Shown here piece after piece: positions 11,551-50,664 of a DNA stretch of 64,000 nt (positions are counted from its first letter, which is position 1; each line of letters opens with the position of its first letter). The position numbers and the translations under genes are program-made. Origin of the DNA: Macrostomum hystrix (taxonomy: Eukaryota; Animalia; Platyhelminthes). The stretch lies in NCBI GenBank assembly GCA_950097015.1, contig CATNEN010000002.1, positions 8,928,001 to 8,992,000 on the forward strand, written 5' to 3'. The notes under the pieces were generated by a model that was not told where the DNA came from, did no database searches, and saw only the letters and a list, made by a program, of their open reading frames with translations.

Positions 11551-11883
11551 TCGCCGTGGCTCTAGGCACGGAGTGGTCAATAACTAGGGATACGGCAGCC
11601 GTGTCCCTATACACAGAGCTGGGGACACGGCGGCCGTGCCTAAGTCCACAAAGCTGGAGACACGGCCGCCGTGGCTCTAGGCACGGAGTGGTCAATAACT
11701 AGGGATACGGCCGCCGTGTCCCTATACACAGAGCTGGGGACACGGCGGCCGTGCCTAAGTCCACAAAGCTGGAGACACGGCCGCCGTGGCTCTAGGCACG
11801 GAGTGGTCGATAACTAGGGACACGGCAGCCGTGTCCCTAGGCACAGAGTTAGAGACACGGCCGCCGTGTCCCTAGTCACGGCG
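11551..11883. repeat. 115-bp GC-rich tandem repeat (~2.8 copies) built from hairpins of the CTAGGGACACGGC motif
   Basis: Unit starts at 11551, 11666 and 11781. It contains the perfect hairpin CTAGGGACACGGC-A-GCCGTGTCCCTAG (11814-11840). Confidence 0.8.
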
Positions 11884-12828: not shown

Positions 12829-13362
12829 TTGCCAGGTGCAGTTTTCACCTACAAGTCAAGTACAACGTTGACTGATGACACCGCTGTGGAGTATCCTGTT
12901 GAGTTTCTGAACTCTCTAGATCCTCCTGGAACTCCATCGCACAACTTGCAGCTGAAAGTTGGGGCACCAATTATGCTCCTCGGCAACCTGAATGCGCCAA
13001 GGCTGTGTAACGGCACCAGACTGATAGTCAGGCGGCTCTTCCCACACGTGATTGAGGCCATGATAATGACTGGATCTGGCAGAGGAGAGTCTGTGTTCGT
13101 TCCCCGGATTCCAATTATCCCCACGGACCTGCCATTTCAGTTCAAGCGACTGCAGTTCCCTGTGAGAGTGTGCTTTGCGATGCCTATTAACAAGGCTCAG
13201 GGACAGTCGCTGAAGGTAGCTGGCATCAACCTGGAGACTCCTTGCTTCTCGCATGGGCAGCTTTATGTCGCCTGCTCCCGTGTTGGAACTCCAGCTGGCC
13301 TATTCATTTTCGCACCAAGGGAAAGAACGAAGAATGTGGTGTATCCCCAGGCCTTGAGGTGA
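12829..13362 (+). pseudogene. Helitron Pif1-family helicase C-terminal fragment
   Basis: YPVEFLNSL..PG.P.H.L.LKVGAPIMLL.NLN..RLCNGTRL, QFPVRVCFAM.INKAQGQSL, FSHGQLYVACSRV and TKNVVY are present. The N-terminal helicase motifs and the Rep domain are absent. Confidence 0.9.
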
Positions 13363-13514
13363 CTCGCAAGCAATTAATAGAAAAGTAGTCACGAATTGAC
13401 CTTGACCTGTCTAACTCTGAACTCTGAAACAGTTTAATTTTGTTTCTTTGACATTGTTATTGTTATGCCATGGCTATTTTCCTTATGTATACGCGTGTAC
13501 ATGCATACTGTATA

Positions 13515-13788
13515 CAGAGGCAGATTTAGGGGGGGGGCGGGGGGGCAGTCGCCCCCATAAATTTTAATCATGGGAATAAGATGCCCCCACCAGGGGCGCC
13601 AGTCGCAGCACTGGCGCCCCTTTTCGGCCGCTGGCGCCCCTTTTTCAGCCGCTGGCTCCCGTTTTTCAGCCGCTGGCGCCCTTTCTTGGCTCCTGGCGCC
13701 CTTTTTCGGCCGCTGGCACCCCCTCTGTGATTCTCATGGCGCTCCCCTGACAGACCGCCCCAAAACAAAATTCCTGGATCTGCCACTG
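13515..13788. mobile_element. hAT-type MITE nested in the Helitron
   Basis: TIRs CAGAGGCAGATTTAGG / CCTGGATCTGCCACTG, flanked by the perfect 8-bp duplication ACTGTATA (13507-13514 and 13789-13796). Confidence 0.85.
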
Positions 13789-15540
13789 ACTGTATAGACG
13801 AGTGGCTAAGAGACATGTTTCTAAAGAAGTAATCAAGAGGGGGCTGTTTGGACAAACTTTTCACTTATTTTTTACTTAAAACGCCCTTAAACAAACTCTT
13901 CACTTTTCATTAATGCAGTAAATGAATATATGGTGACCTTCACTATAAAGTTAATACAGAGACGTGAATTGCTTACTGCTTTGCTTTAAATTTCTGCCCC
14001 AGAAACAACGGGCAAAAAAAGCTAGTATATTTCTAAAAGGCAGTGCGTATCCCCATGGTACAATTGCAATAATGGCCATACTATCCAAATAAAAATAATG
14101 ACTAGCCTATCTGCACAGAACATTGCAGAGATTTTTCCTATCTATTTATATATGCTGTAGGAATACTAACTGGCTTGTCTCAACAGAGAGCTTTAGACCT
14201 ATATATATTTTCCTATCTATCCATATTTTTATACAGTAAAACAAAGCTAATTGGTGCCAAATACAGGTTTTACTTTCTTAGAAACAAATTTGATTGCAAT
14301 TTTACATGGTGTAGATTTTTAGCCATGCATACTTAAGGCAGTCACTTAAGCCAGTCTTTATTCCTACTATATATATACAAACAGATAATAAAGCTATCTC
14401 TCCAGTGTTTTGTGTGGGTTAGCTAGTCATTATTCTCATGGTTCTGTCTGGATAGTATTGTAATAGTGGAAATAAGCATGGCCTTTCTAAAAAGTAGCTT
14501 TTAAATTCTCTATTGGAGTAAATAGGGGTTTTCGCAGACAATGTCTGGCACGCTTGTGAAAAATTACTTGCGCAACTGTGCAGAAAGAAATTTCTGTCCG
14601 CATGGCCACACCTTGTGTGCATAAAGTTTTTGTAAGTATGTAGATGTATAACAAACAGTGCACCCTTGTGCCCCTACACTAATGTCTTGTGTTATTTATA
14701 AATTTATATTTTGTTATACTTAATCCCAATTTACATGTAAAAGTACATATAGATGCAATGCTAGTAGTAAATGCCAGTGCCTCTGTATTCGCACCTTGTG
14801 AGTTTAAATATATGTATATTAAGACACATTATAAAATACATTTAAATGTACATGTAGTTACACATGGTATAGCAGTGTGCACCCGTGCTGTACATCCATG
14901 CTATTGTGTACTTAGGTATACATTTACATAATAAAATAAACTTACATGTACATGTGAGTAATTTTGCTTACTTAGTAGCATATATAGTTTTATAAATTCT
15001 GAGCCAAGACTCAATAACTTCAATAGCATACTTTTTCATTTTCAATGGGAAATACTTTTACTATGTACACATTTTAAATTAGGTAGCCACATAAGTAAAA
15101 TATCTTATTTAATTAGTTTTAAAGCATGAAAACCACATTTAAAGGTTTTTTCAAATGCAAGACTCTTACAGCAATGAAGGTATGACACAAATAAGTTTTG
15201 TATACAAATATACTAAAAGGCTTAACATTCCTACTTTCTTGAAATACACAATTACATTACTATACAGTTTTTCAATTCAGTTTTAGACTTTTCAAAAACA
15301 TTGTTTTTTTAATGGGTTTCATAAAAAGTTGAACTAAGCTTGAAATGTTGTATCTAATTTTTATGTGTAACCCATTTAGCTTATTAAATTAAAATAATTT
15401 TTTTCTTAAAGTTTCCTAGAGTAACATTAGCCTTGTTCAATTAATTTCTTGTTTTCATGATTTTATATTTAACTTCAGTTTTGACTTAAATGGCTTTAAT
15501 TTTCTGTGTTTTTCAATTGTGTTCCAAATTTAGTAGGCTT

Positions 15541-18500
15541 GCTGAATTTGTTACTATAAGAATTAACTGATGAGGAAGTAGCTCCTTTCATGACCTTCAC
15601 CTTTCATAATCCAGATCATATAGTGGGTGCTGAATTTGTTACTATAAGAATTAACTGATGAGGAAGTAGCTCCTTTCATGACCTTCACCTTTCATAATCC
15701 AGATCATATAGTGGGTGCTGAATTTGTTACTATAAGAATTAACTGATGAGGAAGAAGCTCCTTTCATGACCTTCACCTTTCATAATCCAGATCATATAGT
15801 GGGTGCTGAATTTGTTACTATAAGAATTAACTGATGAGGAAGTAGCTCCTTTCATGACCTTCACCTTTCATAATCCAGATCATATAGTGGGTGCTGAATT
15901 TGTTACTATAAGAATTAACTGATGAGGAAGTAGCTCCTTTCATGACCTTCACCTTTCATAATCCAGATCATATAGTGGGTGCTGAATTTGTTACTATAAG
16001 AATTAACTGATGAGGAAGTAGCTCCTTTCATGACCTTCACCTTTCATAATCCAGATCATATAGTGGGTGCTGAATTTGTTACTATAAGAATTAACTGGTG
16101 AGGAAGTAGCTCCTTTCATGACCTTCACCTTTCATAATCCAGATCATATAGTAGGCTTGCTGAATTTGTTACTATAAGAATTAACTGATGAGGAAGTAGC
16201 TCCTTTCATGACCTTCACCTTTCATAATCCAGATCATATAGTAGGCTTGCTGAATTTGTTACTATAAGAATTAACTGATGAGGAAGTAGCTCCTTTCATG
16301 ACCTTCACCTTTCATAATCCAGATCATATAGTGGGTGCTGAATTTGTTACTATAAGAATTAACTGATGAGGAAGTAGCTCCTTTCATGACCTTCACCTTT
16401 CATAATCCAGATCATATAGTGGGTGCTGAATTTGTTACTATAAGAATTAACTGATGAGGAAGTAGCTCCTTTCATGACCTTCACCTTTCATAATCCAGAT
16501 CATGAATTTGTTACTATAAGAATTAACTGATGAGGAAGTAGCTCCTTTCATGACCTTCACCTTTCATAATCCAGATCATATAGTGGGTGCTGAATTTGTT
16601 ACTATAAGAATTAACTGGTGAGGAAGTAGCTCCTTTCATGACCTTCACCTTTCATAATCCAGATCATATAGTGGGTGCTGAATTTGTTACTATAAGAATT
16701 AACTGATGAGGAAGTAGCTCCTTTCATGACCTTCACCTTTCATAATCCAGATCATATAGTGGGTGCTGAATTTGTTACTATAAGAATTAACTGATGAGGA
16801 AGTAGCTCCTTTCATGACCTTCACCTTTCATAATCCAGATCATATAGTGGGTGCTGAATTTGTTACTATAAGAATTAACTGATGAGGAAGTAGCTCCTTT
16901 CATGACCTTCACCTTTCATAATCCAGATCATATAGTGGGTGCTGAATTTGTTACTATAAGAATTAACTGATGAGGAAGTAGCTCCTTTCATGACCTTCAC
17001 CTTTCATAATCCAGATCATATAGTGGGTGCTGAATTTGTTACTATAAGAATTAACTGATGAGGAAGTAGCTCCTTTCATGACCTTCACCTTTCATAATCC
17101 AGATCATATAGTGGGTGCTGAATTTGTTACTATAAGAATTAACTGATGAGGAAGTAGCTCCTTTCATGACCTTCACCTTTCATAATCCAGATCATGAATT
17201 TGTTACTATAAGAATTAACTGATGAGGAAGTAGCTCCTTTCATGACCTTCACCTTTCATAATCCAGATCATATAGTGGGTGCTGAATTTGTTACTATAAG
17301 AATTAACTGGTGAGGAAGTAGCTCCTTTCATGACCTTCACCTTTCATAATCCAGATCATATAGTGGGTGCTGAATTTGTTACTATAAGAATTAACTGATG
17401 AGGAAGTAGCTCCTTTCATGACCTTCACCTTTCATAATCCAGATCATATAGTGGGTGCTGAATTTGTTACTATAAGAATTAACTGGTGAGGAAGTAGCTC
17501 CTTTCATGACCTTCACCTTTCATAATCCAGATCATATAGTGGGTGCTGAATTTGTTACTATAAGAATTAACTGATGAGGAAGTAGCTCCTTTCATGACCT
17601 TCACCTTTCATAATCCAGATCATATAGTGGGTGCTGAATTTGTTACTATAAGAATTAACTGATGAGGAAGTAGCTCCTTTCATGACCTTCACCTTTCATA
17701 ATCCAGATCATATAGTGGGTGCTGAATTTGTTACTATAAGAATTAACTGATGAGGAAGTAGCTCCTTTCATGACCTTCACCTTTCATAATCCAGATCATG
17801 AATTTGTTACTATAAGAATTAACTGATGAGGAAGTAGCTCCTTTCATGACCTTCACCTTTCATAATCCAGATCATATAGTGGGTGCTGAATTTGTTACTA
17901 TAAGAATTAACTGATGAGGAAGTAGCTCCTTTCATGACCTTCACCTTTCATAATCCAGATCATGAATTTGTTACTATAAGAATTAACTGATGAGGAAGTA
18001 GCTCCTTTCATGACCTTCACCTTTCATAATCCAGATCATATAGTGGGTGCTGAATTTGTTACTATAAGAATTAACTGATGAGGAAGTAGCTCCTTTCATG
18101 ACCTTCACCTTTCATAATCCAGATCATATAGTGGGTGCTGAATTTGTTACTATAAGAATTAACTGATGAGGAAGTAGCTCCTTTCATGACCTTCACCTTT
18201 CATAATCCAGATCATATAGTGGGTGCTGAATTTGTTACTATAAGAATTAACTGATGAGGAAGTAGCTCCTTTCATGACCTTCACCTTTCATAATCCAGAT
18301 CATGAATTTGTTACTATAAGAATTAACTGATGAGGAAGTAGCTCCTTTCATGACCTTCACCTTTCATAATCCAGATCATATAGTGGGTGCTGAATTTGTT
18401 ACTATAAGAATTAACTGGTGAGGAAGTAGCTCCTTTCATGACCTTCACCTTTCATAATCCAGATCATATAGTGGGTGCTGAATTTGTTACTATAAGAATT

Positions 18501-21500: not shown

Positions 21501-22284
21501 ACTATAAGAATTAACTGATGAGGAAGTAGCTCCTTTCATGACCTTCACCTTTCATAATCCAGATCATATAGTGGGTGCTGAATTTGTTACTATAAGAATT
21601 AACTGATGAGGAAGTAGCTCCTTTCATGACCTTCACCTTTCATAATCCAGATCATATAGTGGGTGCTGAATTTGTTACTATAAGAATTAACTGATGAGGA
21701 AGTAGCTCCTTTCATGACCTTCACCTTTCATAATCCAGATCATATAGTGGTGCTGAATTTGTTACTATAAGAATTAACTGGATGAGGAAGTAGCTCCTTT
21801 CATGACCTTCACCTTTCATAATCCAGATCATATAGTGGGTGCTGAATTTGTTACTATAAGAATTAACTGGATGAGGAAGTAGCTCCTTTCATGACCTTCA
21901 CCTTTCATAATCCAGATCATATAGTGGGTGCTGAATTTGTTACTATAAGAATTAACTGATGAGGAAGTAGCTCCTTTCATGACCTTCACCTTTCATAATC
22001 CAGATCATATAGTGGGTGCTGAATTTGTTACTATAAGAATTAACTGGTGAGGAAGTAGCTCCTTTCATGACCTTCACCTTTCATAATCCAGATCATATAG
22101 TGGGTGCTGAATTTGTTACTATAAGAATTAACTGATGAGGAAGTAGCTCCTTTCATGACCTTCACCTTTCATAATCCAGATCATATAGTGGGTGCTGAAT
22201 TTGTTACTATAAGAATTAACTGGTGAGGAAGTAGCTCCTTTCATGACCTTCACCTTTCATAATCCAGATCATATAGTGGGTGCT
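15541..22284. repeat. 88-bp satellite array, about 77-78 units
   Basis: Unit GCTGAATTTGTTACTATAAGAATTAACTGATGAGGAAGTAGCTCCTTTCATGACCTTCACCTTTCATAATCCAGATCATATAGTGGGT. Copies are near-identical, with recurrent 76-bp and 39-bp deletion variants. Confidence 0.98.
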
Positions 22285-22981
22285 TAAAATTTCAGGTGTA
22301 ATATCTGAGAGTCAATAACAGGAGGATTGATGTTAAAAAGTTTTATGCTGTTGTAAATGGCCTAATCAGTGTACCTAGGTCCTAAAATGGGGTGGAATTA
22401 AATTTGAAATAATAAATAAAACTTAGACTGCCACTTTATATGAGTAACGTCAAATATAATAGAAAAGTAATAAAAGTTATGTAAATTTTTGCTTCTTACA
22501 AAGCTTGTGATATTTTTTGAGTGTTTCTTTTGTTTATTTTAAATTGTTTATAAGAAAAAAATACAATTTTTTGTGTGATTCTAGAATTCTGAATTAAACT
22601 TAGCATAATTTGAAATCAAACCTTGTACTATTTTTGCTTATCATAATCTGCTTAGATTGTTACCTGTCTGGCTGTCTATCTTTCTGCTATATTTTAAATA
22701 AAATAAAGAAATAAAATTGCCAAAGGAGGTAAAAAAAACTATAGGAAACAATACTATAGATTATGAATTGTGGAATAAAGCACAAGATTGTTTAAATTGT
22801 ACCCCATTCTGCATATTTACTAAGTCAAAATTGTTTCCAAGCCATTGGATAAATAAATTTAAGTTTTAGATGCCTAACTGTCCAATAATTATATTGTGTG
22901 CTTAAATGCTCAATGAAAGAAAATCATCAAATTGTCTCTGCTATGAGTCCATGGAATGTCTTCTGATTATTCTCTGTGCAG

Positions 22982-25818
22982 ATCGTTTCCAACACGGCCT
23001 GAAGACTGAGCGCTTCAGCCCAGCTGCTTCAGGCGTCAGCTCAGGGGCTCAGGATTGTCTGACAAGTCTGGCCAGCGATGCCACCGGCGCCTGCCGCTGT
23101 CTGGCCTACAGCTCCAATGGCGAATTCTTCGCCCACTGCAATGGCACCGCCGTGAAGGTGCGCAAACTCGATGCCAACTCCAGCATAGACCTGCCCCACC
23201 CCAAGGCTGCTCAGCTGGCCTTCTCACCCTGCGGCTCCGTGCTGGCCGTCTGGGAGCAGTTTGCCGTCACGAACGACAATCCGCAGGGCTCGCCTAACCT
23301 CAATCTGTACGACTCGGTCACTGGCGCTTTATTAAAATCGTTCGTACACAAGAAGGTGGACAATTGGCGTCCAGCCTGGACTGAGGACAGCGTGATCTGC
23401 GCCCGGGGCGTCACCGGAGAGGTGCACTGCTACCAGGTGAGAGGGAGAATTTGCGTGATAGCTACCTTAGTCTACGCAACTCGCTGCTAACTTTTTCATG
23501 GCTTCAAGGAACTGAATAAATAACTATCGGGTACACTCTTTACATGATCCCACTTCATCATATTCACACACATTACCTGTTCAGTAAATTCATTACATGA
23601 TCCCCAGTCAGCACAGGATCATAACACATGAACTAATTAAAATTTTAACACTGGTTTTAAGACGTGATTCTGATCAGCAGACAATCCTTATTTGGCACAT
23701 AAACGCTGTTCTGCATATGATCTCAGTTCTGTAATTAATCTCAACTTAGCGCATGATCTCAATCCCAATCCAACACATAATCACAATTCAGCACATAATC
23801 CCAATCCATCACATGATCCCAATCCATCACATGATCCCAATCCATCACATAATCCCAATTCAGCTCATGATCCCAATCCATCACATGATCCCAATCCATC
23901 ACATGATCCCAATCCATCACATGATCCCAATCCATCACATGATCCCAATCCATCACATGATCCCAATTCATCACTTAATCCCAATCCATCACATGATCCC
24001 AATCCATCACATGATCCCAATCCATCACATGATCCCAATCCATCACTTAATCCCAATCCATCACATGATCCCAATCCATCACATAATCCCAATCCATCAC
24101 ATGATCCCAATTCAGCACAAGATCCCAATCCAGCACATGATCCCAATCCATCATCCATGATCCCCAGTTAATCCAGTGAGGTCTTAAACGATTCGCAGGA
24201 CCGGGACTTCTCCACCATGCGCTGCCGTCTGTCCATCGCCGGCCTGGCCGCCTTCTCGATGTCGCCCGGTCGCTCTGACGCCTGCTTCGTGGCCGCCTAC
24301 ATTCCCGGCACCCGCGGCCAGCCGCACAGCGTGCGTATCTTCCGCTACCCGGACCTCAGCCCCACCTCGCCAGTGGCTAACAAGTCTCTGTACAAAGCCG
24401 AGAGCGTCACCTTCCAGTGGAATCGGCGCGGCACCGACCTGCTGCTGCTGACGGCCTCGGAAGTGTCGCATGACTCCTACTACGGTGAGCAGGGCCTGCA
24501 CTATCTGTCCGTGCGCGGTGAATCGTGCGCTGTGCCGCTGCAGAAGGCCGGACCGATTTACCACACCGAGTGGCACCCGGACTCGGCTCACTTTGTGGTG
24601 ACCGCCGGCTCCATGCCCGCCAAGACCACCGTGTTCAACTTGCGCTGCGAGCCCGTGTTCGATTTCGGCACCGGGCCGCGCAACGTCACCTACTTCAGCC
24701 CGTTCGGCAACATTCTCTGCCTGGCCGGCTTCGGCAATCTCAAAGGCGACGTGGAAATGTGGGATTTCCCCAACAAGCGCCTCATGGCCAAGCTGCTCGT
24801 GTCCGACGCCACGCAGTTCCAGTGGTGCCCGGACGGTGTGCATTTCGTTGCTGCCACCACGTCGCCTAGGCTGCGAGTCAACAACTGCCTGTCAGTGTAC
24901 GACTACACTGGCAAGATTGTGTCCAGGCGCGACTTCGACTGCCTGCTGGAGGTGGCCTGGCGACCCCGGCCCGCCTGCGAGGCGCCTCGGCTGCGCTATG
25001 ACACCAGCAAGTCCTTCCAGGCCATCACTCAGCAGAGCCAACCGACTAGGTAGGCAGGCTCGGGTCTTTTTGATTCGCAGCAGCTGGAACACTGAGATTT
25101 ACGAAAGTTTCGCTAACAGTAGGACTATCTAGCCATCTTGCCGCCCGTTTCTATGCCAATGAGGAATTTCCCCCTGAAAGCGTTTCTAGCAGCGCCTGAA
25201 TCCTATCAGCGTTGGGTGGTGACTGATTGGTTGTCAGACTAGGCGATGGTGTCCTGTGGTTGAGCTGCGCCTAGTATTTTGGCTTGATCTGTGAAATTGG
25301 AGAAATTCGCGTCAGGGTGTCCATTGTGGCCTAGTTCCACCTGTTGTAGCCCTTGAAGGTCCAGCAGCTCCGTCTAGATAAAGGTAGGTGACCACCGAAG
25401 ACGGAGATGATGCAGGCACATTCGGGTGACATGCTGATAAATATTGAAGGCCTGGCAAGGCCGCACTGAGGCGCAGTGCAAATTCGTGTATGGGGGTGTA
25501 TGAAATACACGAGCGCTTAAATGAAAAATCTCACCTTTGGCCAGATTAACTGAATATCTCGACGCTCTGAAGAGCTGGCGATTTGATTCTTGATTCAGAA
25601 GATGCGCAACTAAAAATTACATTTTGGCCCATGTTGTTGAGTTTCGTGTGCTTGCGTTGTTCCGTTCAGGTGCAGCAGAAAAAATTGTCAAGGGGAAATT
25701 ACAAAGACTGTATAACACTGGAATAAGACTGGAAAATTTGTTTGTATTTCATGTACACTCGGCATTCCCCATTAGGTACGTGCCGCCACACATGCGCCAA
25801 CGCCAGGCTGGCGGTGAG

Positions 25819-30604: not shown

Positions 30605-31387
30605 TCAGTCGCTTGAGGTCTGCGCCGCGGAGGCTGCCATGGCAGCAGCCGCAGCCGCCGCCGCCGCCTGCCGCAGCCGGTGCCGCTGCAGCGAGCAATC
30701 CGGGCACCAGCAGTGCAGCGGGTGGGCCTGCGGGTACATCAGCGGGTGCGGCGGGAACAGGGCACCGTGAAACGGCAGACTCGGCTGAGCCGTCGACAGA
30801 AGCGGCGACATCTTGGGCATCTCGGAAGCTGCTGCTGTTGATGTCGTCGGTATGAGTGCCGCTGGAGGAGGCGGCTGCTGCTTCGGCGGTGGCGGCGTCG
30901 GATTGGCGACAGTCGCCGCGCTGCTGGCCACGAGGTCGGACGGCGGAGTCGGCGTCGCTCTCGGAGATCCGCCGCCGCCGCTGCCTCGATGCTTGTAGAC
31001 TTCTGCCAGGAGTTTTTTCATCTCGTCCAGCGAGCTCTGGAGCATGAGTATGTAGTTCTTGGCCAGCAGGAGGGTGGCGATCTTAGACAGCTTCTTGACC
31101 GACGGCCCGGTGGCGTAGGGGATGACCTCGCGCAGGCCGTCCAGAGCGGAGTTCAGGTCGTGCATTCGCTTGCGCTCGCGGCTGTTGATTTTCAGCCTGG
31201 AAAAATGAGACAAACAATTGAGTACAACGAAATAATACATAAAAATCACAGCTCAGGTGTGCTTGAGTACTGGAACTCACCTGAGCTCTCTGCCGCCTTC
31301 CATTTTCTTCCCACTGCTGCCGCCGCTACCGCTGCCGACCATGTCATCGTCCAGTTCTTCGTCGCCTGAGGTTGATTCGAGCCTCTC

Positions 31388-33270: not shown

Positions 33271-33902
33271 TGAGCTGAATATCTGTTAGACTGCAGCAGC
33301 TCTGTTAGGCAAGATGCAGGATTATCAAGATGGCTTTTCGACCTTTTGACCAGGCTGGGCCAGGGCCCCTATTAGTTGGTTCTGACAGTGCTTTGCACTT
33401 CACCATAATTGGCACAGTCCGCTAGCAACCCAGTGCAGTCAGAGGCACTTTAGTCTGCGATTCCCAAACCAGCAAACCAACAAACAAGGCCGAGCGGAAT
33501 CATGCACTGTGCAGGGGAAGCAGCCTCGTCAGCTCCCCAACCCAATGGCCTGCATCCGCCGGTACCGGCAGGGCTGCAGTTTTTATGGCGGCTCTTGGAC
33601 CCCCGGGGCAGCCAACGAAACTGCGCAGTCCCGAGGGCTGACCAGCAGCAGCAGCAGAAGTGCGTCATATCATCATTTAATCGTCATATCATCGTGACAG
33701 CCGCAAATCTCGAGCTTCGAACCGAGCCGACGCTAATAGTTTCAGCGAATGGTCTAGTCAAATGTGTTTTTAACGTGGGAAAAATTTCCTATCTGAGTCA
33801 GCCGAGTCTTCAAGCTCTGGCAATTAGCTTAATACGCAGGTGATTCCGAATCAAATAAAAGCAGAGCTTCAACACACTCGGACGATCACTCAGTGCAAGA
33901 AA

Positions 33903-35615
33903 ATGCCCGCCGCCCTGCCGAGCCTGGCGCTCTGCCTCTGCTGCCTGCTGGCGCTCTCCGACTGCCAGAGACGCCGCGTCGAGTCGCTGCCGAGGCTCAA
34001 CTTCCAGCCGAGCTTCCGCCAGTACTCCGGCTACCTCAACTCCACCGACAACCGGCGCCTCTTCTACTGGCTGGTCGAGAGCTCCCACGCGCCACCGTCT
34101 TCTGCGCCGCTCGTGCTGTGGATGAACGGCGGTCCCGGCTGCTCCTCTGTTGGCGGTCTGCTCATGACGAACGGTCCGTTCCTGGCCAACGACCGCGCCG
34201 AGCTGGACCGCAACGAGTTCGCGTGGAACCGGCTGGCCAACGTGCTGTACATCGACTCGCCAAGCGGCGTCGGCCTGAGCGAGCCCGGACCCGTCGACAA
34301 GTCCGTGCTCAACGACAATGTCACCACGCAGCTCAACCTGGCAGCGCTGCTACACTTCTACAGCCTGTTTCCCGAGTACCGAGGCCGGCCCTTCTACATC
34401 GCGGGCGAGAGCTACGCGGGCATCTACATCCCGCTGCTTGCCTCCGCCATCGTGAGCAGCGGCCGCCATCCGCAGCTCATCAACCTGACGGGCATCGCGG
34501 TGGGCAACGGCCTGCACGTTGGAGAGCGTGACTTCCTGGCGAACGAGTTCCGCTCGATGGTGGCCGAGTCCATGGGAGCCGCCCTGGATTTAGTCCGTGT
34601 TTACAGAGTGCGTTGGTGGCTACCACCTCTCATTGTAGCCTTGTAGCCTAGAAATTGTAGCCTTGTTGATTCGTCTTGTAGGTCGACTTGAAGGTTGTGG
34701 GTTCGAATCCCTAATCCATTGGAACAATTTGTGTCCTTTGGCATGACACTTAACTCTGCATTTGTTAGGTGTAATTAAAGGTGGGTGTGGCGTCCCCCCA
34801 GTCAATGGACTGAACAGCCGTACGCAGCCTTCAGATGCGCTGCGCATTAGCTGCGGCTGTGCTGTCGGCTGCACATCTGGCACAATCGTGGCAGGTGTAA
34901 TCAATTATCGTCATTATTATTGGTAGGTGTCGGGTGCGCAGGTGGGTGATTGCGCAGCATCCGCATTAACCCGCAGAATCACGATTTGTCAGCGCTGAAC
35001 CCGTACAACATCGCACAGCCCTGCTACAACGACAGCGAAGCTGACAGCTACCCTTGCTTGAACTCCACCGGCCTCGTCAGCTACCTGAATAACCCGGAGG
35101 TCCGGCGAGCTCTGGGCGTCAGCGAGTCCCGCTCCGTGAAATTCGTCATCTGCAACAGCGAAGTCAACGGGGTCTACCGCAAGAGTGAGGGAGACGTCCT
35201 GGGCCAGCTCGTGAGCCTCGCCAGCCGCGGCGTTCCGACACTGCTGTTCCACGGCACACTGGATGTCCTGCTGCCTGTGCACCTCACCCTGCGGCTGCTG
35301 CGGCGGCTGCCCCGAGACTGCGGTGCCGAGCCGGCGGCCTGGTTCTACTCGCTAGCGAAGCCTGGCTACGGTCAGCAGGTTGGCGGTGTCCAGAGGTCTT
35401 TCCTGCGCGGCCGTCTCCGTCACCGCACGGTGGTCGGCGCTGGACACTCCGTCATCACCGACAGGCCGGAGATTGGCCTCCAGATCCTGGAGGACATGCT
35501 GGCTGGCGATGGCATAGATGTTGACGATGCCTGCGAGTCAGCCAAGTCTGTTGACTGCTGCTGTTCACTGATGCTGCTGCTGCTGTTGCTGGTTCAAGTG
35601 GCAACAGTTTCCTGA
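33903..35615 (+). CDS. Serine carboxypeptidase, family S10 (cathepsin A-like), with signal peptide and hydrophobic C-terminal tail; intron ~34608-34976
   Basis: QYSGYL, LFYWLVES, WMNGGPGCSS, WNRLANVLYIDSP.GVG.S, catalytic GESYAG, GTLD and GAGH. The exact splice sites are uncertain. Confidence 0.88.
34643..34920 (+). mobile_element. tRNA-derived SINE in the carboxypeptidase intron
   Basis: B-box GGTTCGAATCC is followed by TTGTGTCCTTTGGCATGACACTTAACTC. The body matches the reverse complement of 62853-63164. Confidence 0.75.
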
Positions 35616-38475: not shown

Positions 38476-39276
38476 TACGCGCTCTTCGGTGCCATACGCA
38501 TAAAAGCAATAATACGCACTGCCACCTGTCAAATTTTAACTAATCACCTGCAAATCAATCGCGTTAAAATTAAACAGAAGCGTAAGAAAATTACAGTGGC
38601 AAGTAGAAAAAGGGATGTCACATTTCATCCTGTTAGAATTTTTTTCTTCCCAAGCAAAAATGAAAGGGTACGAGTACATGCAAAGTACAAGTGACAACCT
38701 GGACAGTCTGGAGAGAAACTTTTCACAGGTGTTAACCTGCTTTTGAGTGTCATCGGCTCTTTACAAGGCCCTCCTCGAGAGGTGAGTCGGATAAGTCACG
38801 ACTAGAAAAGAAACAAGAAATCTCCAAGAAGAGGAAGCTGCGGTAAGGCTCTGAATACCCATTCATTTGAGCCAGGTGTGTTAGCCTGCTATCGCGCTGG
38901 TAATCCTATCGATTTCTTGGATTAACCCGGCAGACCTTGCGTTGCAGAATTCGAATCCCTTTAGACTCAAGACATTCCACGTGTACGCTCTCGGGTTCGA
39001 CTCCCTATTCGCACACAGTGAAGGGTCTGGGTATTAGCTCCGTGCAGAATTACCTGTTAGTGTCAACGTACCTGCGTATACTTGTCCCGTTCCGCTGAGC
39101 ACACTCGCACACTGACATACACGCATTCACATTCACACAGGGTGTGTACACATCACCTGAATCATTCATCGTCAGGTGGTGTACACTACTGTATCACTGT
39201 ACCTTCTATAGTAGTTAGTTCTCCTAAGCAAATCAATAAATAAAAGTAAATCAATAACTTTTCCACAAAACTGCAG

Positions 39277-39897
39277 ACCGAAAGAGCTACGAAGGCATCA
39301 GAGAAGCTTTCGCTTGGAACTTTGCGTTCACTTTCCTGCGCCTCATTGTGCCTAAATTAGATGAGCGCATCAGGGCCACTCTACAAGTCGGAAATATGCT
39401 CAGTCAAAGCAAACTCAACGGCAACAGAATTCATGTAGCCCCTGAAAAAACCATAGTAGTAAAAAAATATTTCATTCTAGTTCCGGAAAAACTTGACCAA
39501 AATATTGATATGGACAAACTATTTCACGGCTGCGAGAAAAATTGTCTGCTGAAGTTTGAAGGCCTGGGCTATCAGAGAAAAGTTTTTGTGTACCTGATGG
39601 ATTTGAGCCACTCACGCCATCATCTTTGGAGATTGGGCCTCTCCAGTTTTTGCCATTAAAAAAATGGAACAAGGACAAGAAGTTCCAGAAACCAACGAGA
39701 AAATCTTCCAGCAGTTCAAGGTCGCTCAAAAGCTGATCCTGAACCACGCAAGCTTTCCCAAGCTGCTTTTCAGCAGTCAGCTTGATGCGGGCGGAGATTG
39801 TCCTAATTGGAGCTCAAATGTGGAAGTACTCGAGGTGAGCGATGGTGACAGCCTGCGACAGCGCCTGGAAAGGGAGGCTGTGAGGCTGAGGCTGTGA
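39277..39897 (+). pseudogene. STING cyclic-dinucleotide-binding-domain paralog exon, frameshifted
   Basis: EAFAWNFAFTFLRLIVPKLDERI...KYFILVPE...GLGYQRKVFVYLM, then a frame change near 39606-39612 to HAIIFGDWASPVFAIKKM...FQQFK...LILNH. It is collinear with 47959-48590. Confidence 0.8.
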
Positions 39898-42424: not shown

Positions 42425-45400
42425 ATGATGAACGCACCTGAGAACATCGAATTGCCAAGCAGCTCTGTGACTCTGCTGAGCTCTGCTATCGGTAAGTCTT
42501 GCAGCTGGAACTGGAACTGAGGACTATAATAGGCCGGTCAGGTTCAAAGGGTAAGTCTTGCAGCTGGAACTGAGGACTATAATAGGCCGGTCAGGTTCAA
42601 AGACAGGCCGCTCAATGTCTGATTTCTCGGTTACGTCAGCGGATAAGAGACGTTTCACTATAAGAGACGTTCCACTAGACTTAGATTTTCACATGCCTGC
42701 AATCAGTTAGGAAACCTACGAGCGTATTTTTCCTATCTTTGCTCCATCTGGGCGGTATGTCATAATCTCTCATTTTATGCCCTGACTTCATGTTTATTTG
42801 AGTGATTTAAGAATTGAATATTTACTGTGATTGGGCTATGTTTAGAAAAGTGGCATTGCTGGTGTACAAAAAAGTTTTTGTATATTTTGGTAAGAATAAA
42901 TCTCATGTTACTGTTTTGAGAGCAACCTCAAACTGTACAGAGTCCGATTTGTGAAACTTGGGTTAGTTTTTAAACAATTACTAAAACAAATTCCCAACTA
43001 AAGTATGCAATTTCTACTATTTTAGTACAAGCCTCTACCAAAGTTTGATCAGGTTCGCTAACCTCAGATTTACCAGGTTAGCGTGTTTTGCTGCCGCATC
43101 CATTTCTTTTCCATTTTCTTGTACTTTTTCAGTACTTATTGACGGTGACTACCGCACAGTCAACGTCGCTTTGATTGTGGTCGGAGGAGCCAACGATGCC
43201 AGCAGAGAATTGGAAGACGAAATCAAAAATGGCTTCAGATATGTAGTTTCCGCCAGGGGCGACACAAAGGAGTATCGCATTGTTAAAGTCAGCCGACAGG
43301 ACAACCTGGAGGACTGGGCTAGTGTTGTGGAGCTGGTGTACAACTCTGATGCCATTGTGATTCTGTTCAACCAGAAGCCAGCGGTGTATGTTCAGCCTCT
43401 CCTGCTACTGACGATGAAGCGGGTAATGCCTCCGGGAGCAGGAACTGCTGGATGCCTAAAATTTTAGTATTTTCGGTTGATCGAACAGACACACTGGGTG
43501 ATCTCACCTTCCGCTCATCAAATTGTGTCGCACTATAAAGCAGTAGACATAAAAAGACAAAATCCTGGCAATTTTCAAAGGGCCATCATCTACCGCGATG
43601 ATTAGTTTCTTAGCTGCAATATTTGCTGTGGCTGTTGAAGGGGCTTTAAGAATATCGGTTACGACTTCGGACTCTCGACTTAAGCAGTTGGATTCCAGAC
43701 TTCACTGGAACAAAATTTGGCTTCTAGCAAGACACTCAACTCTTCACTGCTTGAGTTCAGACAGCTGCTGATTGGACATCGGCATAGCTGGGATAGCTGG
43801 AATTGCTGAGATTGCTGATAGCTGGGATTGCTGATAGCTGGGATAGCTGGAATTGCTGGAATAGCTGGGATAGCTGGAATAGCAGGAATAGCTAGGATTG
43901 CTGATAGCTCGGATAGCTTGGATAGCTTGGATAGCTATGATTGCTTAGATTGCTGGGATAGCCGAGATAGCTGGGATAGCTGGAATTGCTTAAATAGCTG
44001 GGATTGCTGGAATAGCTGGGATAGCTGGAATAGCAGGAATAGCTAGGATAGCTGGGATAGCTGGGATTGCTAAGATAGCTGGGATAGCTGGAATTGCTGA
44101 AATAGCTTGGATTGCTGGAATAGCTGAGATAGCTGGGATAGCTGGAATAGCTGGGATGTCTGTGATAGCTTGCACTCTGGGATTGCTTGGATGTCTGTGA
44201 TAGCTTGCACTCTGGGATTGCTTGGATGTCTGTGATAGCTTGCACTCTGGGATTGCTTGGATGTCTGGGATAGCTTGCACTCTGGGATTGCTTGGATGTC
44301 TGTGATAGCTTGCACTCTGGGATTGCTTGGATGTCTGGGATAGCTTGCACTCTGGGATTGCTTGGATGTCTGGGATAGCTTGCACTCTGGGATTGCTTGG
44401 ATGTCTGTGATAGCTTGCACTCTGGGATTGCTTGGATGTCTGTGATAGCTTGCACTCTGGGATTGCTTGGATGTCTGTGATAGCTTGCACTCTGGGATTG
44501 CTTGCACTCTGGGATTGCTTGGATGTCTGGGATATCTAAGGGTGCAGCCTTCAGACGCGTCGCGCCATAGCTGCAGCTGTGCTGTTAACGGCATGTCTGG
44601 CCTAATTTAGGGAACGCAAAATGAATTATGATTGCATTTCCGTATTAACATTAAGGTTAGTATTATTTGGGGGAGAACTGTTAAGGAACTAATATTCAGA
44701 AATTAAATTTCTAGCGCGTATCGACCAGAGGAGTTCAAGTGTACGTTGTGGACAACATGGCTTCCCGAACTCAGGCAGGAGAGACAAAGCCGCTTGACCT
44801 TCTGCAGCACCCGAAAGTTCTCGACCACATCCGGTCCGTTGTGAAGTTGACCAATGAAGATTATAAAAAAAAGTTCGAAAGCTTGGTAGCGGAAGTCCGG
44901 GCCGGCATCGAAGGTGCTCAAGGTGAGAATACTAATTCTATCAATTGCGTAGCAGGAGCACTGGTTAATAACCAAAATGATGTGGAACATTTTTGCTGCT
45001 ACAAAGCTTGCCGGACCAGTACCAGGTGCGCTTTTTCTTCACAAGCTTTGGTTCGCATCGCAGCATTTAAATAACAGTCAGGACTCTTATCCTTCCTCTC
45101 TTCCACTTCTCCTTTACTTCTCCTTTCTCTCTGTGCTTGTTTACGCTCGCCCCTCCTATTGTACTTTCTCCTCTCTCCCTCTTTCTTTCAACTTCTTAGC
45201 AAACCTTCAACTCTCTTTCCGCTCCCTCGTCTCTGATTGGCTAGCTGTTCGTCTCTCTTTCCTCACCCGTCCTTTCCAGCTCTTTCCCTCTGACCCGTCC
45301 TCACTCCTTTTACCCTTCAGCCCCTTCCTATCTCTGGTTAATATATTTGATTCTCGGCACATAGGGCTGGTGCCTGCCGCTGTTCGATTCGTTCAGTGCC

Positions 45401-48400
45401 GAAAATACAGTGAATCACTGCGAAGGCTCCAATATTTATTGAAGTCAACACAAGGGCTGCTAAACTGGAAGGATACAAAACACAGGGGCTGCTAAACTGG
45501 AAGGATACAAAACACAAGGGCTGCTAAACTGGAAGGATACAAACACAAGGGCTGCTAAACTGGAAGGATACAAAACACAAGGGCTGCTAAACTGGAAGGA
45601 TACAAAACACAAGGGCTGCTAAACTGGAAGGATACAAAACACAAGGGCTGCTAAACTGGAAGGATACAAAACACAAGGGCTGCTAAACTGGAAGGATACA
45701 AAACACAAGGGCTGCTAAACTGGAAGGATACAAAACACAAGGGCTGCTAAACTGGAAGGATACAAAACACAAGAGCTGCTAAACTGGAAGGATACAAAAC
45801 ACAAGGGCTGCTAAACTGGAAGGATACAAAACACAAGGGCTGCTAAACTGGAAGGATACAAAACACAAGGGCTGCTAAACTGGAAGGATACAAAACACAA
45901 GAGCTGCTAAACTGGAAGGATACAAAACACAAGGGCTGCTAAACTGGAAGGATACAAAACACAAGGGCTGCTAAACTGGAAGGATACAAAACACAAGGGC
46001 TGCTAAACTGGAAGGATACAAAACACAAGGGCTGCTAAACTGGAAGGATACAAAACACAAGGGCTGCTAAACTGGAAGGATACAAAACACAAGGGCTGCT
46101 AAACTGGAAGGATACAAAACACAAGGGCTGCTAAACTGGAAGGATACAAAACACAAGGGCTGCTAAACTGGAAGGATACAAAACACAAGGGCTGCTAAAC
46201 TGGAAGGATACAAAACACAAGGGCTGCTAAACTGGAAGGATACAAAACACAAGGCTCTCAATTCGTAGAAAAATACTTAAAAGCCAGCTTTTTAAGTGAA
46301 ATGCATGGACTGGACGGCAAATTTCAGGTCATCGAGCAAATTCAACACAGAATTGAGTTCACCAGTTATAAAATGGGGTAGCAGCATCAGCTGGGGAAAA
46401 GTTGGCTGGGGTGGCGCCCTCCCTCTTGACTGGACAGTTGGATTTCAAACGTGAGTTTCCTTGTTTATTATCGGTACTATATTGTGGCGCTGTTAAAAAG
46501 CACAAATGTACAGCATTTTCAATCAATTTCTGGCTTGAAACCTGCTGCGTATCGCAGACTAAAGTTCAGACCTGCTGCTGTCTCACATGGCTTACAGTAT
46601 ATTAAATTTGGTTCAGATAAACTGCCGTTTTTTATTTTCTCAATGAATTTTTCGCTTATAGCTCGTAAATGGCCCTCAACTAATTGTTCTACGAATATAA
46701 CAGGTTCTACTCTACCTGTTAGAGAGTATACAGGTTGCTTGCCTTCTCTCTCCCAGCTACAGCAGTAGATAGAAATTAACGCACTGGATTTAGAGGCCTA
46801 ATTCTGAGTATAGTGAGGCTCACATTCTCAGGCTGCAGTGTGCAGGAAAACAGCTTTTACGAGTGTACTTTATTGCCAAACTCATTGATTGTGTTAAAAG
46901 GAAAATATGGTTAGGGTTAGTCTAGTTCGCATGAGCGGCTTACTTACTTAATTGCAGGGGGGCCTGGGGCACTTGACGCACAAGCGCAGGAACGGCATGC
47001 CCCCAGGCCGGCGAACTAGGCGGGAGTCGCCCATCGCGCCATCTAGACCCCTGAACACAGGCACCTCATACACAGCCGCAAGCCAAGCGGGGAAGGGGGC
47101 AGCAGCCGGAGTGCCTCTCACCCCCAGGCCCGCACACGCACAGAGCTGACCAAACCAGGGGAGGACTTATATGCCTGAAGGGTAGGGACGAGAGGACCAA
47201 GCCACGCGCGCAGACGGCTGGTGAAACCTCGCCGCTCAGAGCACGCAAGGCTGGTGCACACCCGCCCCACCCCCCATACAACGCCTCACACCCGGCCCAA
47301 CGCACAAACACAAACACAAACAAGCAGGCACACAGAAGGCAGGAGCGAAGCTATTATTTCAAGCTTTGATTGCACGAAATATGGTGCACCTCCGCCGGTC
47401 GCTACTGTCCAAACCCCCCAACAAGTCCCGAAATTAATCGTGACTTGAAGGGTGAATCGAACTAGCGTCCTTTGGAGTGCGAGGCAGCGACGTTAGCCGC
47501 TGACCCACTCGCCCCCTCGCATGAGCGGCATTCTACAAAGGCATTTGTCTCCTCTCGCGTTGCTAGGCTAGTTCTCTTTCCAACGAAGAATAACCAAAGC
47601 GCCATTTCGCGACGCAGCTAGGACGCGTTGGCCCCTCGGTCTTAGCTCCATTGTTCGAAGGACATCGAGTTTAGCAAGACCTCTGGTTATGACTGCTTGG
47701 CCAGTTTGAATGCTGGGTGGGGCCATTCCAGTGTCAGAGAATGTCAGCGAAATCCAAGCGCTTTCAGAGAGCCATCTGTCCTTGTACTTTCGTAGCCCTT
47801 CAGTAGAGCTCACATTAGTGGACCAGCTAAAATATTTGTCAACAACGAGGAAAACGTGCTATGACATAATATGATAACAAGGATTCTGAAGCGATGACTT
47901 TCTGCGACACAGCTTACAACAAAAACATAATCAAAAGCTGCTTAAAAACCTGCTCCAGATCCGGCGAGCCATGCGAGCACCGGAGAAGCTTTCGCCTGGA
48001 ATTTCGCCACATCCTTCCTGCGTCTCATTGTGCCCAACCTGGAGACTCGGATCACAGAAGCTCTCTATGATGGCGATCATCTCAGTGAGAGCAAGCTGAG
48101 CAGCGTGGGAATTCAACTGCCACCTGAAAGAATTATTGTGCTCAAAAATTATTTCGTGCTTGCTCCGGACAGACTGGGTCAAGACGTCAGTCCGGACGTC
48201 CTGTTCCCTGGTTGCGTGAAAACTGGGATTTTGTATTTCGATGGCCTTGGCTATCAAAGAAAAGTGTTCATCTACTTGATGGAGCTGGATCAAAGAACAC
48301 CTTCAGGAGAGACGCACGCTGTCATCTTCGCCGACTGGGCCTCCCCGATCTTCGCCATGCGAGACATGAGCGTTGAAGCATCGCAAGGACTGGACATTGT

Positions 48401-50664
48401 TAAAGTTCGAGAGGAAATGTTCGGTCAGTTCAAGAATGCCCTGAAAATGATCATCTACCATCCTTACTTTCCAAGGCTGATTTTCAGCAATCCAGAGAGC
48501 CACATCAGCACTGAGCAGAGCTCAAAGGTGGCGCTGGTTGAGGTGGCCAGCAAAGAGAGTCTGAAAATGTGCATGAACAATGAAAGCAGGAGCTTTGTTG
48601 CCCAACCCCAGGCGAAGAATGCGAGTTTAGGTGGAATGGCGTTTGGGTCAAAGTTTTCTATGGAATGCGCAAATCTGCATCATCTGCTCGTAGCAATGAG
48701 CAGCTCCCTTAGCAATCAGACGGACGCACTTAAGATGGCACTGGATTCCAGACTACCTGGCAGGTACGAACTTTCGGCAGTTAACGATTTGCAATTTGAG
48801 CATTTGCAACAATTCCGGAGAAGTCTTCTTGTGCTGAGTCCTGAGGACTTGAGAGGCACCGAGAATAATAAAGTCACCGCTGCTGCTGAAAAGGTGAGTC
48901 TGTTCAATGCTAACTGTAAGGGTTTGGCAAAGCGGGGCAAGCACTGAGTGGACACCCGCACCAGCCAATCAGATGACCAGCGCCCACACCCCATTCTGGC
49001 TCGGCTACGCAAATTCACGTTGAGAGACTTCAGTCTAGATCGCCGAACTTCTAACCGAAAATTCAGGAGTTCGAAACAAGATATTTCGCCCTGCAGCTGT
49101 GAAATGGGAACGAGAACTAGCTGGTGTAGATAGAGCTTAGGGGATGTGCCAGCGCCTCCTGTCCATAGAGCCGTACGCTGCATTTGAATGCACCACAAAA
49201 GATGCGGCTGTGCCACTGGTTGAGTATCTTCTGGGTTCTGTATGAACCTGTCAACTTCTCAATGCCAGATAAAAATGCATCAATATCTTGTGCTTTCATT
49301 TCAGATGAGCATGACTGGCGAGTGCTGCGTTTCCGTCATCATTGTGGGAGACTTCGGAGTTGGCATTGAAGCTGTCCACGACGTCCTGCCGGATCGGCTG
49401 AGATGCCTGCCCTACTGCTGCGTGGCAGGCGTGCGAACTCTGACTGGCGACAACGTTGAAGGCAGGCTGCCCTTCGGACAGCAGCTGCGAACTCTTGCTG
49501 ACGTCATCGATGGCCTTCGTAAGTTGAAGTAACTGATTGTCGTAAATATTTGTTATTTTTTTGACCATTTATAAACACCTGCGCTCTATTACTCTAGACA
49601 AATTGTTTAGAATCTTGTCGTTTATCACTCTCCATTCAAATTTGCTGTGACTAAATTTCAGGTCTTGCAGAGGTCCACTGTCTCGAAGTTAAGGATGTTT
49701 TTCCGCTGATGTCAATGGCCAGTGTCCTGACCGCGAACATTTGCTGCGGCTTTGTCGACAAGATGGAGAAATGTGAGTTTCTTTCTGGTTTAATGGAAAC
49801 CTGACCGAATCCCATGTGGAAAATTTGTGTAGGATAAAATATTTTTCTCCTGCGATCGATTTGAAAGCGAAGTAACTGCAGTGATGCAGAGTTCCATGAA
49901 TTAAATTTTATAGGATGGATTCGACAGTCAAACGACTTCACGCTAAGGATGGGCCTCGATTAGTCGCAGAAACTGTGGCTGATTGAGATGCAAATCAACG
50001 GAAAAACGTTGGTGCAGGGCTCGAAAATTGAGCACGCTCTAATATTGCAGTGAATAGGCTGCAAAAATGTTACTCCCGATGGATTTCCACAAAGAGTATC
50101 CGAACTAAAAGTTTACTAGAAATCGGTCATATTTCTGGCCGGGGACTTATTACCATTCCACCTGCTGTACGAAACGTAGGAAACGAACTCATCCTTGATC
50201 TTGCAGACATGCGGGACGAGTCTGCTGACGAAAGTCAGCTGGCAGCTTTGCCGTTCGACAAGCCGTACTTCATGATCCTGCCTGCCAGCAATCGCTTCCA
50301 TGAGCAGAGCGCTCTGGAGCAGGGCCTGGCCGACCTTGGAGCCCAAAAAAATAACGAAAGCTTCATGGGATCCAATGGCAGGCCCTACAATTATCAAGTC
50401 TGGCACTGGCAGCATTCAAGACTGGCCTTCGAAATTCCCGGCCAGTTTTCTTACCTGCGCGAGCAGCTGAACTGGGGCTTCGCCGGACTGATCAGCCCGC
50501 AGCAGGTCGACGACATCCTGGAGGAGTTCGGACGAGGCTTGGAGGAGCACTGCAGAAATCACCGGTTTGTCAAGACTGTCAGGTGGAGCTATGAACAAGA
50601 AGGCGCTGCTGGTTTGCTCCAGCTGCTGAAGTCTTTGAGGCATCCACCACTTAAGGATGATTAA
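42425..50664 (+). CDS. Tandem TIR-like/STING/TIR-like/STING protein (~812 aa, no transmembrane region); exons 42425-42491, 43133-43422, 44715-44922, 47959-48893, 49305-49518, 49662-49772, 50051-50664
   Basis: All six introns are GT-AG with matching phases (1,0,1,0,1,1). The joined CDS is 2439 nt with no internal stop. Two segments align by eye to the STING ligand-binding domain, and two alpha/beta segments have TIR-like strand-helix periodicity. Confidence 0.72.
43785..44535. repeat. 9-bp (GGGATAGCT-type) and 35-bp (GATAGCTTGCACTCTGGGATTGCTTGGATGTCTGT) minisatellites in intron 2 of the STING gene
   Basis: Visible arrays, followed by a 3' SINE fragment at ~44545-44610. Confidence 0.93.
45451..46255. 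repeat. 32-bp minisatellite (CAAGGGCTGCTAAACTGGAAGGATACAAAACA)n, ~25 copies, intron 3
   Basis: Visible near-perfect array. Confidence 0.95.
46940..47520 (-). mobile_element. Probable second tRNA-derived SINE family
   Basis: The minus strand starts GGGGCGAGTGGGTCAGCGGCTAACGTCGCTGCCTCGCACTCCAAAGGACGCTAGTTCGATTC (A/B-box-like) and ends in (TAAG)n. Confidence 0.45.
47959..48590 (+). other. STING-like domain 1
   Basis: GEAFAWNFATSFLRLIVPNLETRI vs human STING [31 protein letters not shown] vs RLYILLP; FADWASPIFAMRDM vs VLEYATPLQTLFAM; VREEMFGQFKNALKMII vs [17 protein letters not shown]. Confidence 0.85.
49700..50664 (+). other. STING-like domain 2 (split by one intron)
   Basis: SMASVLTANICCGFV (first helix, in exon 49662-49772); KPYFMILP; MGSNGRPYNYQVW vs AGIKDRVYSNSIY; LAFEIPGQF vs VLEYATPL; FAGLISPQQVDDILEEFGRGLEEH vs [22 protein letters not shown]. 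Confidence 0.7.

Follow-up and report, generated by a model that had tools for sequence, protein, structure and literature searches.

Does the genome of the flatworm Macrostomum hystrix encode a STING receptor, and how would such a protein be built? The question is raised by a 64,000-nucleotide stretch of assembly GCA_950097015.1 (contig CATNEN010000002.1, positions 8,928,001 to 8,992,000 of the forward strand), which was analyzed as a whole and is referred to below as the window; positions are counted from its first letter. A preliminary description of this DNA had proposed a seven-exon gene at 42425-50664 encoding a soluble protein with two TIR-like and two STING segments. Our analysis indicates that the gene very probably encodes one soluble chain of about 760 residues that contains, in order, an N-terminal alpha/beta domain, a first STING domain (STING 1), a TIR-like middle domain and a divergent second STING domain (STING 2). 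As an account of the whole locus we favor, by a modest preponderance of the evidence, a single intact macrostomid gene for a soluble doubled-STING sensor that would be paired within the chain.

STING 1 was assigned from sequence only, since the AlphaFold model of the corresponding region of a Macrostomum lignano homologue (PAA63807.1, termed P0006; residues 1-350) was too poor for this purpose, with a predicted local distance difference test (pLDDT) score of 41.6. The Pfam STING_LBD profile (PF15009) matched STING 1 with an E value of 1.7e-4 and 21.4 bits, under the gathering cut-off of 27. Among PDB sequences, 15 of 17 matches were STING, over residues 8-145 with E values around 0.02. A family profile of STING 1 matched 75 PDB sequences, and all 60 of the matches listed were STING (best E value of 2.3e-4). 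The sequence signal of STING 1 is weak but specific to STING. It covers the beginning of the ligand-binding domain and includes an AW...GF.R.I.P helix motif. According to the weak alignment with PDB sequences, the substitutions at ligand-contact positions are all conservative (human numbering: Y167 to F, R238 to K, Y240 to F, E260 to D and T263 to S), and P264 is kept. When exon 4, which encodes STING 1, was compared exhaustively by HMMER with 1.84 billion representative proteins, only four clusters emerged; these included the M. lignano homologues (36-38% identity, E value of 6e-20) and one cluster of an octocoral STING-like protein. NCBIfam profiles gave no match. A word-index protein search returned nothing with exon 4 alone and only the known M. 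lignano protein with the family alignment as query.

The fold of STING 2 was assessed on a model of the same homologue. Residues 370-712 of P0006, comprising the middle domain and STING 2, were modeled by AlphaFold with no templates and with a seven-row alignment that contained no canonical STING. Foldseek comparison of this model with the PDB gave 148 matches at E values of 1e-3 or below, and all 50 of those listed were STING or TIR-STING. The top match was the oyster TIR-STING 6WT7 (E value of 1.9e-8 over 366 columns), followed by the bacterial TIR-STING 9LMQ (2e-6) and by anemone and human STING domains (around 4e-6, with a target template modeling score of about 0.6). A VIA-align search of 48,161 representative chains aligned 6WT7 with the middle domain and STING 2 together at Z 12.8, covering 277 residues within model positions 7-343. 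STING 2 of the model aligned with human, oyster, coral, choanoflagellate and fly STING at Z 10.3-11.9 (root-mean-square deviation of 3.1-4.1 Å over 153-171 residues) and with bacterial STINGs at Z 9.2-9.4. In the STING alpha/beta fold, a long opening helix is followed by a sheet of five strands that bears a lid hairpin and then by further helices, and STING 2 fits this fold as judged on the homologue model. This fold should be transferable to STING 2 of the window gene because exon 7 is homologous to the modeled region (tblastn E values of 1e-10 to 1e-15). The combination of AlphaFold and Foldseek that the preliminary description had suggested as a check thus placed P0006 370-712 among STING and TIR-STING structures, and its proposal of two STING folds in one chain is upheld, at the level of a homologue model for the second.

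Within the family, STING 1 and STING 2 are about equally conserved (27-36% and 25-32% identity, respectively). STING 2 has the invariant motifs G-R, W and AFE.P, and its invariant arginine, glutamate and aromatic residues map to the predicted lid hairpin and to the strand after it. The G-R-x-aromatic motif would be equivalent to ligand-contact residues by the predicted hairpin register alone. STING 2 does not look like a decaying copy.

The middle domain (model residues 8-159) aligned by VIA-align with the TIR domains of Cat1 (Z 9.5), RPS4 (Z 8.8), RPP1 (Z 8.2), IL-1RAcPb (Z 8.2), MyD88 (Z 7.7) and TRIF (Z 7.6) as well as with a SEFIR domain (Z 7.9). It can be called TIR-like by predicted fold only; the full-length match to TIR-STING helps this assignment and falls short of proof. 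With regard to the catalytic glutamate of NAD+-cleaving TIR domains, the acidic position behind the third strand is not shared, with EDLR in the window gene and QDLE in M. lignano. Profiles of the N-terminal and middle domains gave no matches among PDB sequences or in Pfam. For the N-terminal domain, the order of strands and helices fits a flavodoxin-like fold, which includes TIR but is unspecific, and Foldseek ranked a bacterial TIR-STING first (E value of 6.5e-4) with the low-confidence model of P0006 1-350. A caspase-like identity of the N-terminal domain was considered and rejected: Z scores were below 8, the His/Cys dyad is absent and only two alignment columns are invariant. A hydropathy scan of the window protein revealed neither a membrane block nor a four-helix N-terminal block. 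The highest mean over 19 residues was 1.68, reached in an Asp-containing strand and in the first helix of STING 2, in agreement with the earlier view that the protein has no transmembrane segment.

All of these assignments depend on a correct gene model. With the exon coordinates originally proposed, all six junctions are GT-AG with compatible phases, and the predicted coding sequence of 2439 nucleotides has its sole stop codon at the end and encodes 812 amino acids. Residues 73-606 (E value of 1e-40) and 677-787 (1e-11) of this product are collinear with P0006 (712 amino acids). The proposed structure held in its mechanics and by homology, except that the acceptor of exon 7 was misplaced by 156 nucleotides and that exon 1 has no homologue. 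The start of exon 7 at 50051 was rejected: it adds about 52 residues found in no homologue, and an in-phase acceptor at 50207 eliminates them. The site at 50207, CTTGATCTTGCAG/AC ATG, has a good pyrimidine tract. The junction that it creates is identical to that of the M. lignano paralogue P0002, with a tyrosine codon split as T/AC and followed by ATG, and its phase is the same as in P0006. Since 50051 brings in residues without a homologue and 50207 recreates the split-Tyr-Met junction of P0002, 50207 is preferred. Exon 7 most likely comprises 50207-50664, which gives a predicted coding sequence of 2283 nucleotides and 760 amino acids; 50051 may serve as an alternative acceptor.

The seven predicted exons lie on the forward strand. 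Exon 1 (42425..42491) holds the proposed start codon and consists of 22 codons plus one nucleotide; its ATG stands straight after TTTTAG/G, and a GT donor follows. Its residues are covered by no homologue in the alignment with the M. lignano proteins. In M. lignano, too, the gene opens with a very small coding exon that ends in phase 1, although its position differs. The acceptor-like TTTTAG/G before 42425 could be a trans-splice site. Exons 2 (43133..43422) and 3 (44715..44922), both with AG/GT borders, encode the first and second halves of the N-terminal alpha/beta domain. Exon 4 (47959..48893) is uninterrupted: it encodes STING 1 (about 47982-48590) and, beyond a linker, the leading half of the TIR-like middle domain (about 48669-48893); the Pfam STING_LBD and PDB STING matches fall here. 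The fusion of STING 1 to the middle domain therefore needs no splicing assumption. Exon 5 (49305..49518) completes the middle domain and adds a linker; it aligns with P0006 450-521, shares an LP..LRCLP motif with it and takes its fold assignment from the homologue model. STING 2 spans exons 6 and 7. Exon 6 (49662..49772) encodes its first long helix with the conserved motif PLMSM...AN...GF and aligns with P0006, P0002 and P0003 (PAA82218.1); in the AlphaFold model of P0006 it forms the long helix with which the STING fold begins. The corrected exon 7 (50207..50664) provides the remainder of STING 2 and the stop codon, and is supported by the in-phase acceptor, the M. lignano-like junction and tblastn.

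The exons of two M. lignano genes (L001 and L002) were mapped for comparison, and all five internal introns of the window gene model coincide in position and phase with introns of the P0006 gene. The junction between exons 2 and 3 has the same position and phase in P0006 and P0002. The phase 1 junction between exons 3 and 4 lies in a codon whose aligned counterpart in P0006 (G136) is also split, and it falls at the L151/E152 junction of P0002. The junctions between exons 4 and 5, with a methionine directly after it in both proteins, and between exons 5 and 6, in phase 1, are conserved with P0006, and the last junction agrees with the M. lignano genes only after the shift to 50207. At the base composition of the window a random codon is a stop with a probability of 0.056, so 760 open codons would arise by chance at about 1e-19; this figure is weak as proof because the exons were picked to avoid stops, and homology is the real test. 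Introns 2 and 3, the latter 3 kb long, contain open reading frames of 105-187 amino acids at 43892-44455 (reverse strand), 44977-45495 (forward) and 46451-46768 (forward). The two that were tested had no Pfam match, and these frames may be transposon remnants.

The gene appears to be a member of a fast-evolving, tandemly expanded family that is shared with M. lignano. Identity to the M. lignano relatives is 27-38%. By comparison, five M. lignano proteins share 73-74% identity with a cathepsin-A-like exon in the window (33840-34646), and the next best matches, from many phyla, about 50%; this places the host among the macrostomid flatworms, as a species other than M. lignano. Either the STING-like gene is evolving much faster than this neighbor, or the M. 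lignano relatives compared are paralogues. On M. lignano contig NIVC01000486.1 (L001), two family members of 582 and 605 amino acids lie in tandem on the same strand at 10001-15863 and 21576-25298, 5.7 kb apart, and a third is on the contig. The tandem members are of the type without the middle domain (the P0002 type), in which one large exon carries both STING domains with a short linker; its only interruption is a 93-nucleotide intron that follows the first STING 2 helix. P0003 (927 amino acids) has an extra alpha/beta-looking domain before the usual four (residues 1-127), for which no Pfam match was found. The M. lignano homologues themselves scored under the cut-off of Pfam STING_LBD or did not match it.

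The window also contains a relic of an upstream paralogue (39271..39879, forward strand) that corresponds to the STING 1 part of exon 4 only. It lies about 8 kb upstream and is 54% identical in amino acids and about 66% in nucleotides to 47953-48545. The acceptor site is kept; the frame shifts near 39605 through a 20-nucleotide gap relative to the main gene. No further exons of a second gene were detected near the relic. Elsewhere in the window are a 767-residue open frame with MULE transposase and ZSWIM1-3 RNaseH-like/helical domains (1613-3916, reverse strand; Pfam E value of 2e-29), which represents either a transposase of the Mutator-like kind or a ZSWIM gene that was domesticated, and three ordinary host genes upstream of the STING gene: an eIF2A exon (24217-25053, forward; 4e-61), an exon of a basic helix-loop-helix (bHLH) transcription factor (30605-31249, reverse; 4e-17) and two exons of the cathepsin-A-like serine carboxypeptidase (33840-35615, forward).

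How might such a protein work? STING binds a cyclic dinucleotide in a pocket between two subunits that are paired through their first helices. In its second half the flatworm protein has the build of the oyster and bacterial TIR-STING receptors. The protein would sense a cyclic di- or oligonucleotide in the cytosol. Within one chain the STING domains, which are unlike, would pair through the conserved first helix of each, so that one asymmetric pocket results; closure or oligomerization, driven by ligand binding, would follow, and the TIR-like domains thereby brought together could give an output by TIR-TIR scaffolding or by NAD+ cleavage. The first helices of STING 1 and STING 2 are among the best-conserved stretches of the family, yet they are unlike each other. 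Pairing within the chain is favored because some M. lignano paralogues link both STING domains directly, with no middle domain in between. We put forward intramolecular pairing with a signaling output as a tentative proposal that falls somewhat short of even likelihood. The fullest version, in which a single-chain STING pseudo-heterodimer reads an asymmetric nucleotide signal at 1:1 in an asymmetric pocket, responds through its TIR-like domains and belongs to a working pathway in an early-branching flatworm lineage, is a more doubtful possibility still.

Several results weigh against the favored account. As a single sequence, STING 2 found no Pfam STING match and no STING among PDB sequences; its family profile found no STING among PDB sequences either, and profile-profile comparison of STING 1 with STING 2 was not significant. 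Of the two segments said to align with the STING ligand-binding domain, the first does so under the profile cut-off and the second aligns with nothing by sequence. The fold evidence for STING 2 is carried over from P0006, which is 25-33% identical to the window protein, and the model of P0006 370-712 has moderate confidence (mean pLDDT 67.9). Database searches with the window gene used its exons singly, and whole domains were represented by the homologues. For the middle domain, unrelated Rossmann-like GTPases reached Z 8.1, barely under the four best TIR scores, and the TIR and SEFIR profiles (PF01582, PF13676 and PF08357) had no match even at an E value of 10 in either the N-terminal or the middle domain, for the window gene and for its homologues alike. 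The HMMER comparison with STING and TIR suggested at the outset therefore returned a weak STING 1 and neither STING 2 nor TIR. The fold searches with the N-terminal half are uninformative given its low-confidence model, for which VIA-align gave generic alpha/beta folds only (Z of 8.2 or below). No nucleotide cyclase was seen in the 64-kb window, and no search was aimed at cGAS-like receptor (cGLR) genes in the genome. The gene model itself is a prediction from genomic sequence and homology. This last point, together with the broken partial copy 8 kb upstream, would suit an artifact or a dead gene, with two neighbors mis-joined or a pseudogene that is not expressed. We consider that highly improbable: 760 codons stay open over seven exons with canonical sites, unspliced exon 5 meets a stop 14 nucleotides beyond its donor, and the junctions cut through domains, so that the pieces cannot stand alone. 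Mis-joining of two genes in particular is very unlikely, because the junctions fall inside domains and both the order and the introns recur in the M. lignano gene models.

A stronger challenge concerns the N-terminal domain. It may be an unrelated alpha/beta domain, and the protein a product of fusion with the order X-STING-TIR-STING and not a doubled TIR-STING module; we hold this to be a serious contender, if slightly less probable than its negation. With VIA-align this domain matched caspase p20, Piwi MID, receiver and sugar-binding domains best, and the top 50 matches included no TIR. Profile-profile comparison was not significant for any pair of domains, including the N-terminal with the middle domain, and internal duplication thus has no support at the sequence level. 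Family builds also vary, with one lacking the middle domain and one having an extra N-terminal domain. Against this, a fold search with a model of pLDDT 41.6 says little, Foldseek nevertheless placed bacterial TIR-STING first for the N-terminal half, and the strand-helix order is compatible with TIR. The earlier claim that a TIR-like segment precedes each STING domain accordingly stands for the middle domain, by fold, and not for the N-terminal domain. With the same architecture, pairing could instead take place between chains, like with like or STING 1 with STING 2, giving dimers or open polymers similar to the filaments of bacterial TIR-STING. All solved STINGs are dimers of separate chains, the filament-forming bacterial TIR-STINGs 7UN8 and 9LMR are among the structural matches, and a TIR-like domain of about 150 residues separates the two STING domains, so that intramolecular pairing is not forced. 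The direct fusion of the STING domains in M. lignano paralogues favors pairing in cis, and both first helices are strongly conserved but different from each other; we regard pairing between chains as rather unlikely. It is less likely again that STING 1 alone works as the receptor and that STING 2 is a degenerate STING-fold scaffold or regulator that binds no ligand. The loss of all sequence similarity to STING profiles in STING 2, with conservative residues retained at the ligand-contact positions of STING 1, would agree with such a division of labor, but STING 2 is conserved in the family as well as STING 1 and keeps its invariant arginine, glutamate and aromatic residues in the predicted lid hairpin and next strand. 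We retain the doubled-STING sensor paired within one chain as the preferred explanation.

The main weight of these findings lies in the history of STING in flatworms and in the possible existence of a natural single-chain STING. STING and cGAS are reported by Wu et al. to have been lost from flatworms. A 2026 study detected neither STING nor cGAS in the planarian Schmidtea (PMC13563047), and most platyhelminths are devoid of a cGLR according to Li et al. (PMC9980059). Our literature search found no paper reporting STING in any flatworm. The sequence and model evidence above suggests that macrostomid flatworms have retained STING-fold proteins that diverged beyond standard profiles. The loss of STING would then not be phylum-wide, and profile-based surveys would under-count STING, because proteins of this fold persist in macrostomids where profiles do not see them. 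If the pseudo-heterodimer is real, a working STING pathway would survive in an early-branching flatworm lineage despite the reported loss of STING and cGAS, and one chain holding both halves of a normally dimeric receptor would test how the symmetry of STING relates to its choice of ligand. M. lignano can be made transgenic and is open to RNA interference, and the function of the family is therefore directly testable there.

The closest relatives are the M. lignano proteins PAA63807.1 (712 amino acids), PAA82216.1 (582) and PAA82218.1 (927), which share 27-38% identity, collinearity over four domains, intron positions and the tandem layout with the window gene. They are far more diverged from it than the cathepsin-A neighbor is from its counterparts, and their builds vary. 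They are known as database predictions only, automatically named Stimulator of interferon genes protein, Death-domain protein or SEFIR-domain protein, and no paper on them was found. Compared with canonical STING (TMEM173, PF15009), the flatworm protein matches the start of the ligand-binding domain in STING 1 and has conservative contact residues there; it differs in having no four-helix membrane domain, no C-terminal tail motif that we could see and a second STING fold in the chain. An octocoral protein from Paramuricea clavata (CAB4035226.1, P0004; 501 amino acids, partial) likewise combines two STING ligand-binding domains (residues 115-262 and 336-483) within a single predicted chain. Its copies, unlike those of the flatworm, are canonical (Pfam E value of 9e-83) and stand in direct tandem with no TIR, after a hydrophobic N-terminal segment; it may be a genuine protein with tandem STING domains, or else two neighbors fused in the gene model.

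TIR-STING proteins of bacterial CBASS, an antiphage signaling system based on cyclic oligonucleotides, such as SfSTING (7UN8) and 9LMQ/9LMR, resemble the flatworm protein in placing TIR before STING in one soluble chain, and match the homologue model of its second half at full length (Foldseek E value of 2e-6, VIA-align Z 9.4-9.9). The flatworm gene, in contrast, is eukaryotic with introns, has two STING domains per chain and belongs to no cyclase operon; its neighbors are the cathepsin-A-like, bHLH, eIF2A and MULE transposase genes, whereas CBASS TIR-STING sits in an operon with a cGAS/DncV-like nucleotidyltransferase (CD-NTase). By predicted fold, its STING 2 stands closer to the STINGs of animals (Z 10.3-11.9) than to those of bacteria (Z 9.2-9.4).

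The oyster TIR-STING 6WT7 is the structure that the second half of the flatworm family matches best. Like the oyster protein (6WT6/6WT7), the flatworm protein is predicted to be soluble, has no membrane helices and carries a STING domain that is immediately preceded by a TIR-type domain. Unlike it, the flatworm protein has no sequence similarity to TIR, nor to STING in its second STING domain; the oyster domains are detected by standard profiles, and in the flatworm STING 1 alone is, under threshold. TIR-STING is reported to occur in several lophotrochozoan lineages and in a nemertean (PMC8662601, citing Gerdol 2017), and a 2024 oyster survey gives nine STING annotations in three classes, among them proteins with two STING and two TIR domains. 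The architecture had been thought undescribed in the preliminary description. This cannot be maintained, since the doubled build is already on record, as one line in the oyster domain table, and the M. lignano homologues, some of them automatically named STING, are public. The flatworm form departs from the doubled oyster form in that its first domain is alpha/beta and not established as TIR. The protein encoded in the window is best regarded as a variant of lophotrochozoan TIR-STING that has diverged strongly and not as a new category.

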